Both the position numbers and the translations under genes were made by a program. Below are positions 44,101-47,100 of a stretch of 64,000 nt of DNA, in pieces. Every line of letters begins with the position of its first letter. Within the stretch, counting starts at the first letter, position 1. Source of the stretch: Haliotis rufescens (taxonomy: Eukaryota); contig NW_025964334.1 of NCBI RefSeq assembly GCF_023055435.1, positions 25,978,001 to 26,042,000 of the forward strand, written 5' to 3'. Below the pieces are notes generated by a model. The model saw only the letters and a list, made by a program, of their open reading frames with translations, ran no database searches and was not told the origin of the DNA.

Positions 44101-47100
44101 TGGACCATACAATTCAGTGATTGACATCATGAGCATCGCTCCACTCAATTGGGCTACAGCATGAAATGATACAGCAATAGTGGTGTAACAATAGGGAGAT
44201 ACAGTATTGTATCCCAATACGAGGCCTACTATAGACCGCCTCCATGGTCTAGTGGTCGAGAGCCACCCGGAGAGCGGAAGGTTCTGGGTTCGATCCCCGG
44301 CCGCGTCATACCAAAAGACAGTCAGGGATTGAGGTCAGTAAACATGTACATGTAGTAATTTATTATAGGAAGTGTATCATCTTGTATCGATAGAGAAAAA
44401 AGGGTATCATGTTTTGTATCGTATGAAAACTCACGATGTATTGTTTCACCCCAAGTAAACTAAAATAATTGTCAAATCCAACAGTACATTGCACTTCACC
44501 ATTTCACTACTTTACAGGACCCTTAGCAGAGCGCCAGATAACTTTTTGAGCAATTGAGTTTTTATTTGAAGGTTTCTATTTTAATTGGGATATTACATTT
44601 ATCACTGGGTAACCAATATTTGGTTCACTCCTCTATTTATAACTCTATTGGGTTTTTCATAATGAGTAAATATTTTGAGATTTAAACAAAAAAATGAAAT
44701 AATGTTTTAGATGTAATATAATGGTTCTAAATGTACAGTCCTACGTACAACCCCCTTAGCAGTGCTCGATCTGAGCACATCTAAGATCTCTGTTGCTGTC
44801 AACACCAATTTTCTGGTGGACAATTAATTAACACACTGGGGGGTTGGGGTGAGGTGCGGGAGAAATTCTCCAGCATCTGGATGGTTTAGGATTTCTTGCT
44901 AACTTGAATAAAGATAAACAATCTAATTTTAGCTACAGTTAATATTCCATGGTTCTCCCACTTCGATTTGTTTTACTCTCCTCAACAAGCTGTGTACACA
45001 CGTGGACATAGAAATATCTTGTGAGAGAATACATTTTATCAGTGAAGTTAATATATTCATCACACAAAGTGCTACATTTATGAGCCTGGATACATCATGA
45101 AGTTGGGTGAGTAATGTTTTAAGTTATTCCTAGTGACTTCTGTAAATATATATTTATTTAGAGATGTATGTGTATTGAGAAATGATAACATACACACCAG
45201 TTACCATTTACTTTCGAGAAAAACAGTTGAAACGTAAATCCAAACAGAATTATCTAACCTAATTATAATTAATTGTATATTTGATAAACTAATTCCTTGA
45301 TAATGTATACACTCTTTGAAACCATATTGAAACTTAATTTGGGTATGAAAAAACAGCATAATACCAGCAAGCAAACTTTTTCTTTTAGGCTTGCTTAACA
45401 AGGATGTTTGGGCTGAGCACAATACCGGTTTTAGTTGATAAGGAGAACAAATGGATCAACATTGAGGACTTCTGTAAATTTTTGAGGACTGAACACCATG
45501 AAGAAGACAGAATAAAGATAAAAAAAGAAAATATCCGAAGAGAAGTTGCTTCCTATCGCAATAATTATATCAAGACAGACGGAAATGCAATTTTTCTCAA
45601 TACAGTTGCAATTGTAAAATACATATGTCACCACAGTGATGACTTTAGAATATGCTCAAAGATAACACAGAGCATTCACAGCAGTATATTTGGAGGCCAA
45701 CAGAAAACAAACTCAAGAACATTATTTGACTTATATAAACAGATTGCAACATCACAATTTACACATGATATCAATGACCTTATTGATTACACTGCCATTG
45801 AATCAGATGTTCCGAACTTGGAAATATTATACAAGAAGCATTTCACAGAGAAGGAGTGGTCTAACATTTGTTTGTTTGAGTTGCACTTTGCAAATGACAT
45901 TGTAGCGACTGAGCGTGATAATACCACTGACAAAAAATGGGAATATTTTGGAACAGTTGCCAGTGCAAAACATCTTAGCAGTGCTATACTGAAAACTGCA
46001 AAATCCACAATCACAAGACGACTAGACAGATATAGTTCGCACATTGAAGCAGAAGGCATTGAGATATACGCAACATTTCGTCATCGCCCTCATATTGTAG
46101 AAAATCAAATATTAAATGATCTAACTAACATTTTCCCTGGAGAAATACTATCAGTCACCTGCGTGAGTTGCCATTGTGTTTCAACCAAAAATCATCAAGA
46201 TCTTGTGGAGGTGTTTGTGGAATGTAACCCAGCAATTGAGGAAAGAAATGCTGAACTTCTACAAAGGATCATTACCAGTAGACTGAATCAAGAGCACTGC
46301 TTACAATGTCATCTTATTGTGTTGTTTCCACTTGGATCACTTGAACCATATTACCAAAAGAATGGCCAAATTGCAAGGTTAAGTCTTCATGATGACTTTC
46401 GCATGAAGAAACTTCAAAGTGAAAACTTTCTGCAGCTCAATGCTCTTTCACAAAATGAAGTTACAGAGATTTCCCTCGATTCCCGTGAAAAATGTCGATC
46501 TTGTTTCACAGCAAATCTACCGAAACCACTCTCTGTCTCTAACTTTGAAATCCTTAAGGAATGGACTTTGGATGTACCACTGGTTGTGCAAATCGTCTTG
46601 GATACATTCATCAACAAAGATACCATTCAGCAATCTAATAACACCCAAAAGACCATGAAGAAGAAATTGGAACGACTCTATACAGCTTATGACCTGCTAT
46701 TGAATACTTACAACAAGAATTTTATCGGAGTTCTGCAGCAGGCAACAACTGATGAGCTTCTAATGAACTACCATAGCATAAGCAATGTCTTCTCAATAAC
46801 AAGTGCTTCTGGAATAACAACATCTTTGTCTCTTGCTGAAAGAAATTTAACAAGCAAATCCATTGATGACACCTTGTACTTTGCAACCTATATCAAGGAA
46901 CATCCTCTCACATATAATACCTTAGCAGGTGAAGTGAAGGGCATGGTGAGCATGAGAGGATGCCACATAGTGCTGATGCTTGACAATCTTGTCCGCCTGA
47001 AGTATCACAGTGACCCAAGCCCAGGAGAACATCGTTCGAAACAGCTCTGCATGTTGCCAATAACACTGCAAGGCATGCCAAAGGATTCAGTTGAAACAGA

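Follow-up and report, generated by a model that had tools for sequence, protein, structure and literature searches.

A putative FAAL/DIP2-type lid subdomain, predicted to be catalytically dead, within the large transposase of an Academ-like transposon from Haliotis rufescens

Introduction

Does a eukaryotic transposase carry a piece of an adenylating enzyme and, if so, which piece and for what use? The question is raised by a 64,000-nucleotide stretch of the Haliotis rufescens genome (contig NW_025964334.1, positions 25,978,001 to 26,042,000 of the forward strand; hereafter the window), in which an open reading frame (ORF) of 646 amino acids at 45404..47344 opens the transposase gene of an 8,643-bp, Academ-like DNA transposon. 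Coordinates are those of the window, and the transposon, its gene and all features within them lie on the + strand. An earlier note on this DNA, made from the letters alone, had suggested that the transposase has an adenylation C-terminal subdomain of the type found in DIP2 and the fatty acyl-AMP ligases (FAALs), at residues 226-337 of the ORF (46079..46414 by translation). In enzymes of the ANL superfamily this subdomain is a mobile 'lid' bearing motifs A8 to A10, of which the A8 region has the pattern G-x-N-H/x-x-P-x-D/E-I/V-E and A10 (P-x-T-x-S-G-K) the catalytic lysine.

Here we combine structure prediction, two structural searches and family profiles to examine this part of the protein. 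We conclude, with a probability of about 0.8, that residues 215-346 (46046..46441), delimited with AlphaFold2 models, the VIA and Foldseek searches and family profiles, are genuinely homologous to the ANL C-terminal subdomain but catalytically dead, and nearest to the FAAL/DIP2 branch.

Results

The predicted domain matches ANL lids in two structural searches

Relatives of the transposase were collected by searching 1.84 billion representative proteins with a profile made from four subfamilies present in the H. rufescens genome. The search returned 572 relatives at E ≤0.001, 179 of them at E ≤1e-30, and representatives of clusters at 50% identity were aligned in sets of 64 and 86. Using alignments of transposase relatives only (the 86-sequence alignment for the domain model) and no templates, we predicted structures with AlphaFold2. 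The model of the whole ORF had a predicted local distance difference test score (pLDDT) of 86 and a predicted template modelling score (pTM) of 0.74; the model of residues 216-350 alone reached 90.9 and 0.86, respectively. The elements of the domain run in the order ββ-α-ββ-α-β-α: a first hairpin and helix, then a two-strand hairpin with another helix, and finally a strand and a helix. In ANL lids this fold takes up about 110-130 residues.

When the two models were compared with the PDB by Foldseek, only ANL enzymes appeared at the top for both, with FAALs first; the best match of the domain model was the FAAL 7r7g (E 2.6e-5, TM score 0.67-0.68, 128 columns). The VIA search, which is independent of Foldseek and covered 48,161 representative chains, placed at the top the FAAL of a Synechococcus olefin synthase (7r7e, residues about 447-570), with a Z-score of 14.3 and a root-mean-square deviation of 2.3 Å over 118 residues. 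Further matches of the domain model were FadD23 (Z 12.8), 6ulw, an entry for the A-domain of a nonribosomal peptide synthetase (NRPS; Z 12.7), FadD32 (Z 12.6) and an E. coli FAAL (Z 10.8). In the separately predicted model of the whole ORF, residues 215-346 matched 7r7e with a Z-score of 13.3. No other part of the 646-residue model matched an ANL N-lobe in the structural search. The structural comparison proposed in the earlier note, a predicted model against ANL C-lobes, thus gave a strong match with FAAL-type enzymes in the lead. The extent given there was right in that residues 226-337 lie inside the domain, but slightly too narrow, since the structural domain spans residues 215-346.

Could the likeness be convergent or due to chance, a generic two-layer α/β domain superposing on ANL lids without common ancestry? 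By the guide to VIA, Z-scores of 7-8 are noise and common among unrelated small domains. However, 14.3 is far above this level, and ranks 1-40 were all ANL C-terminal subdomains, the first chain of another fold appearing at rank 41 with a Z-score of 7.7. The sequence comparisons described next bear on the same explanation.

Family profiles point to the FAAL/DIP2 branch

The translation of the ORF agrees letter for letter with the reading RHRPHIVE…DLVEVFVE… that had been given for residues 226-337. Single sequences were uninformative: a phmmer search of the PDB with the window protein found nothing significant, and a word-based protein search with the 646-residue ORF returned only the ORF protein itself. 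From a single sequence, the identification as an ANL lid would be a guess.

Profiles carried more signal. PF23024 (AMP-dom_DIP2-like) was the only Pfam family matched by more than one of the 64 aligned members (2/64). When all PDB sequences were searched with the 64-sequence profile, the FAAL of 7r7e/f/g came first, with the whole domain covered (residues 454-564, E 0.0044), followed by the Legionella FAAL (E 0.054); with the 86-sequence profile, the FAAL was again first (E 0.031).

We then turned to the host genome, where the DIP2 locus was located with PF23024. The string that the earlier note gave for the DIP2 C-terminus is close to the host DIP2 exons, which read RYHPIDVE and LLVVVVELDG...LVTNAVLEEHYLIVGVVVVVDPGVIPINSRGEKQRMHLRDGFL. 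A hidden Markov model (HMM) of the domain, built from the domain columns of transposase relatives only, scored 20.2 bits (p 2.3e-8) on the exon encoding the DIP2 C-lobe, 13 bits above the maximum of 6.8 bits among 20,000 composition-preserving shuffles of that exon. Alignment of the family to the same exon by hhalign gave an E-value of 4.4e-5 and a probability of 69%, with 24% identity over 71 columns. By contrast, 20 generic host ANL loci, found with PF13193 (AMP-binding_C), scored at most 9.9 bits and mostly below 5, and scores were also low on 1,400 other host ORF pieces. Because the host DIP2 exon scores high and generic host ANL lids score low, the sequence signal is specific to the FAAL/DIP2 branch.

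Several points weigh against the assignment as an ANL lid. The domain structure is a prediction, and AlphaFold may lean towards folds that it has met before. The window protein matched PF14535 (AMP-binding_C_2) with an E-value of only 0.011-0.014 and 16.1-16.4 bits, against a curated cut-off of 25; the best PF23024 match (E 0.028) was likewise under its curated cut-off, and three paralogues in the genome had no Pfam match at all. Searched against the host genome, PF23024 finds DIP2 and not the transposon. The E-values of the PDB profile searches are marginal and worsened with the larger alignment (from 0.004 to 0.03), and an unrelated BolA-like chain stood alongside at E 0.006 with 64 sequences, receding to 0.15 with 86. 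Finally, the upstream DIP2 exon, encoding RYHPIDVE, scored -1.3 bits when taken alone, its histidine being one position off.

The lack of a Pfam match over the curated threshold, the modest PDB E-values and the BolA-like chain are also what a chance likeness would lead one to expect. Against it, three separate sequence tests indicate FAAL/DIP2, the margin over the shuffled exon is wide, generic lids and other host ORF pieces score low, and residues specific to the branch are shared. Taken together with the structural ranking, these points make convergence or chance a very unlikely explanation. We consider the sequence relationship to bona fide ANL lids to be moderately supported, though not overwhelmingly. 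The profile check suggested in the earlier note came out positive, with a qualification: the matches, although weak, point consistently and specifically to FAAL/DIP2, but every Pfam match stayed under its curated cut-off. The broader claim, that the transposase has a DIP2/FAAL-type C-terminal subdomain, is upheld by the structural matches together with these weak but consistent profile matches.

A second weak match to PF23024 was noted in the host genome (contig C612, 130984-131142). It contains two stop codons and may be a DIP2 pseudogene fragment or another FAAL-like domain cut by introns.

An A8-like motif and the 'EH' histidine are conserved, and the A10 lysine is not

The A8-like motif of the domain, H227-x-P229-x-x-[ILV]232-[ED]233 (46082..46102), was defined by the conservation among relatives and by a HMMER alignment to 7r7g, in which it is paired with the FAAL sequence NHYPQDIE. 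H227 is present in 84/85 relatives, P229 in 62 and E/D233 in 82. The G-R..D hinge residues that precede the A8 region are not kept in the transposase domain. A second histidine, H298 (46295..46297), occurs in 84/86 relatives within an 'EH' signature common to FAAL (AAEHQLQ), DIP2 (LEEHYL) and the window protein (NQEHCLQ); it is absent from the generic host ANL C-lobes that we inspected. Towards the end of the domain, the motif R325-F/L-x-L-R/H-D330 (46376..46393) aligns with R-M-H-L-R-D of DIP2; here the window protein reads RLSLHD and the family consensus is RFxLRD, with R325 in 79/86 relatives, F326 in 72/86 and D330 in 76/86. Just upstream of R325, at residue 322, lies the position of the A10 lysine; the window protein has Q there, and only 11/86 relatives have K. 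The strongly conserved or near-invariant residues of the domain are H227, P229, E/D233, H298, R325, F326, R329, D330, F342 and N344. As the catalytic A10 lysine is not conserved and an ANL N-lobe is missing, the domain cannot adenylate.

The same residues invite two other readings. One is that the domain has inherited the binding of a ligand (nucleotide, acyl-adenylate or phosphopantetheine arm) or of a partner similar to a carrier protein, and that this binding would gate transposition. The most conserved residues, H227, H298, R325, R329 and D330, lie in motifs that face the active and CoA/phosphopantetheine sites of ANL enzymes, as this reading would have it. In ANL enzymes, however, it is the N-lobe that forms most of the pocket, and the transposase has no such lobe; the A10 lysine, too, has been lost, so that we regard inherited binding as unlikely.

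The other reading holds that the domain acts mainly in DNA recognition as a zinc-binding module, in which the Cys and His residues matter and the ANL heritage does not. Immediately after the domain, C364-x-x-C367 (46493..46504) is nearly invariant, being kept in at least 90% of the sequences of both the 64- and the 86-sequence alignments, as are H227 and H298; C364 and C367 are, judging from their conservation, possible metal ligands. In addition, Cys 253, 256, 261 and 302, together with H269, are found in about half of the relatives, in which this cluster may bind zinc. The cluster is, however, missing from the other half of the family, and the domain is strongly acidic, with a mean net charge of -10 across the family. 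Moreover, H227 and H298 are both present in the matching FAAL, and DIP2 has the second, with the first displaced by one residue; at least part of this pair is thus inherited and not a new metal site. A zinc module is, on balance, quite unlikely. We also considered the domain as the main DNA binder of the transposase, and its acidity across the family makes this role unlikely.

The domain is an ancient and constrained part of the transposase

When did the transposase acquire this domain? All 86 aligned relatives carry it, with a column occupancy of 96%, and its conservation equals that of residues 1-215. The four in-genome subfamilies, which are 25-39% identical to one another, also have it. 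Between subfamilies B and C, the proportion of nonsynonymous differences (pN) was 0.39, well below that of synonymous differences (pS), 0.84-0.85, the latter being saturated so that dN/dS is not derivable. The domain is a constrained, ancient part of the transposase and not a recent capture.

The host DIP2 C-lobe exon is the best sequence match that we found, as would be expected had this element recently captured that exon. The identity is nevertheless only about 24%, and the presence of the domain throughout the aligned relatives (with 572 matches in all) and in four such divergent subfamilies places the acquisition in the distant past and not recently in this host. Recent capture from the host DIP2 is refuted by this distribution, and we give it practically no credence. 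The suggestion in the earlier note that the domain is captured host sequence can hold only if the capture took place long ago, when the family arose. The domain would have been acquired once, early in the history of the transposon family.

The carrier is a whole Academ-like transposon

The element spans 44736..53378, as judged by copy alignments and its terminal inverted repeats (TIRs). The 17-nt 5' TIR, CAGTCCTACGTACAACC (44736..44752), was found by an inverted-repeat search and copy alignment; the 3' TIR (53362..53378), found by the inverted-repeat search, is complementary to it at 16/17 positions. A TGTA target-site duplication flanks the element at 44732-44735 on the 5' side and 53379-53382 on the 3' side. 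The boundaries agree with other copies: four genomic copies share sequence exactly from 44736 inward, with unrelated DNA outside, and homology to two other copies ends at 53379 and 53382. The 1.33-Gb genome has copies 99-100% identical over the transposase ORF as well as at least three diverged subfamilies with 25-39% protein identity.

Contigs of the public runs X1, X2 and X15 depart from the window sequence exactly at the 5' end of the transposon (44732-44736). Some of them continue into the DNA beyond the 3' end, an apparent empty-site form with a base difference in TGTA, and others run into unrelated DNA, from other insertions. These different flanks and the apparently empty site suggest that the insertion is young or polymorphic. 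Sampled 31-letter words revealed near-identical sequence for 45404-47344 in runs (X1-X18) that bear the labels of three organisms, one of which has a copy that is about 98% identical; such near-identical copies reflect either closely related species or horizontal spread.

The transposase gene is spliced

Exon 1 (45404..47285, residues 1-627) is supported by the ORF and by a GT..AG joint, 47285/47472, in a contig of run X3, which derives from a related organism with about 98% identity. Intron 1 (47286..47471; 186 nt, GT..AG) is skipped in this 2,461-nt contig. Exon 2 (47472..47641), an acidic linker, continues the frame of exon 1; another X3 contig covers 47471-47638 and then passes to sequence at 48104. 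Intron 2 (47642..48103), placed by the end of this second contig's match at 47638, contains a GT-rich microsatellite and N stretches. Exon 3 (48104..51317), assigned by comparison with other copies, encodes the rest of the transposase. A spliced transcript of the transposase gene therefore exists; contigs of runs X1 and X2 retain intron 1. The last residues of the ORF, 628-646, come from reading on into the intron, in keeping with their pLDDT of below 50.

The copy in the window has a 40-nt deletion at 48935/48936 that breaks the exon 3 frame into two ORFs, 48179-49168 and 48930-51317. Because this loss shifts the frame, no full-length protein can be made from the window copy, though its exon 1 is intact. 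Two other copies (L042 and L043) keep the 40 nt and an open exon 3 of 1,084 amino acids, and the spliced protein from an intact copy would be about 1,770 amino acids long, similar to an intronless paralogue in this genome and to the 1,790-1,900 amino acids of relatives in the database. The exons were searched one by one. The TIRs, the target-site duplication, the near-identical copies and the spliced transcript mark the carrier as a real transposon.

This paralogue of the whole transposase, which is diverged (subfamily C), about 1,780 amino acids long and open save for one TAA, was observed elsewhere in the genome (contig C312, within 1158000-1167999, at 2826-8153 of that piece on the minus strand). 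The tandem repeats that flank it encode, in a different frame, zinc-finger-like strings of the HTGEKP type.

Other regions of the transposase

Before the domain comes a 47-residue helix; after it come a helical region of higher conservation and three strands with a conserved D-N. In the model, these three strands and the conserved DN at residues 527-528 belong to a fold that is cut by the end of the exon. At the N-terminus, residues 1-99 (45404-45700) matched the N-terminal domain of DdrC with a Z-score of 6.5, within the noise; the model would allow these residues to be the DNA-recognition domain of the element.

No DDE (RNase H-like) domain was found by Pfam or PDB sequence matches. For Pfam no match would be expected, since Academ lacks a Pfam model (PMC5751038). 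Five full-length relatives (1,800-1,900 amino acids) had no Pfam match and hence no AMP-binding N-lobe, and a profile of 14 full-length sequences found only weak IpgC-like matches in the PDB (E 0.01), with no nuclease or DDE relative.

Two motifs encoded by exon 3, TSGDIDA and GGNDFIPKF, resemble by eye what we take to be the acidic-residue motifs of XRN/FEN/XPG-type nucleases. These two motifs, at 50430-50900 (residues about 500-660 of the ORF 48930-51317), are strongly conserved in relatives; exon 3 gave no Pfam or PDB sequence match to an XPG/FEN-type nuclease.

Discussion

Transposases are known to acquire DNA-binding, chromatin-reading and nuclease modules. It is unusual for a transposase to have acquired a subdomain of a metabolic adenylating enzyme and to have kept it for long in the absence of the catalytic partner. 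What might such a lid do there? We propose that it serves as a module without enzymatic activity, for structure or docking, that sits between the N-terminal region, which would comprise a weakly winged-helix-like part and the 47-residue helix, and the conserved core downstream. Docking would most likely involve the A8 hairpin and the A10 region, the face that ANL lids turn to their partner lobe when they dock, and the module would hold or position another subunit or further parts of the transposase itself. We put the chances of such a docking role at about even.

A more speculative idea is that the lid is no passive scaffold but works as a switch: prompted perhaps by a metabolite or host partner, it would swing, as in ANL enzymes, from one docking position on the transposase core to a second and so license DNA cleavage. 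This seems unlikely to us. If true, such regulation of a eukaryotic cut-and-paste transposase would be new, and its source would be part of a lipid-activating enzyme.

The assignment as a catalytically dead lid homologue is the first fold assignment that we have found for a conserved part of this very large transposase family of 572 relatives, which lacks Pfam annotation. It also offers an experimental handle in the form of a 130-residue domain with five nearly invariant residues. With two other genomic copies whose exons 1 and 3 are open and a spliced transcript in a related organism, the system looks testable.

Full-text literature searches returned no report of a DIP2/FAAL-like or ANL domain in combination with a transposase; an account in Kojima 2020, on Academ domains, is possible. 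Fold and type of element are thus each known, and their combination was found in none of the literature searched.

As for the element, AcademX transposons make a 4-bp target duplication (PMC10045372). The element is Academ-like, and the 4-bp duplication, the huge Pfam-silent protein and the nuclease-like motif recognised by eye towards the C-terminus fit the AcademX lineage. The resemblance, as judged from published descriptions, comprises the single, very large transposase, in which Pfam detects no RNase H-like domain (consistent with PMC5751038), short TIRs and TGTA on both sides.

As for the domain, its closest structural counterparts are the C-lobes of bacterial FAALs (Synechococcus 7R7E/7R7G, Legionella 3KXW, Mycobacterium tuberculosis FadD23 and FadD32, and E. 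coli 3PBK). They share the same fold and element order over about 118/135 residues and have the H-x-P-x-x-I-E and 'EH' signatures in common with the transposase domain, and FAALs are also the top PDB profile matches. Compared with these enzymes, however, the transposase domain lacks the N-terminal adenylation lobe, the hinge motif and the conserved A10 lysine, and the identity is 16-19%. The loop between its first two core strands is enlarged and Cys-rich, and the lid is embedded in the middle of a transposase of about 1,770 amino acids.

At the sequence level, the best match is to the FAAL-like domains of DIP2 (PF23024), in which the segments of the core strand, the helix, EH and R-x-H-L-R-D follow one another as in the transposase domain; the DIP2 lobe differs in following a full adenylation lobe. 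A precedent for a non-catalytic ANL lid fold is provided, going by the PDB title, by the 'pseudo A-sub' of a keto-acid-selecting NRPS module (6ULW; Z 12.7), where the aligned range, 538-665, may be the true or the pseudo subdomain. That lid resides in a biosynthetic megasynthase and not in a mobile-element protein. Next to the NRPS 'pseudo A-sub', the transposase domain would be a second example in nature of an ANL lid used as a free-standing module.

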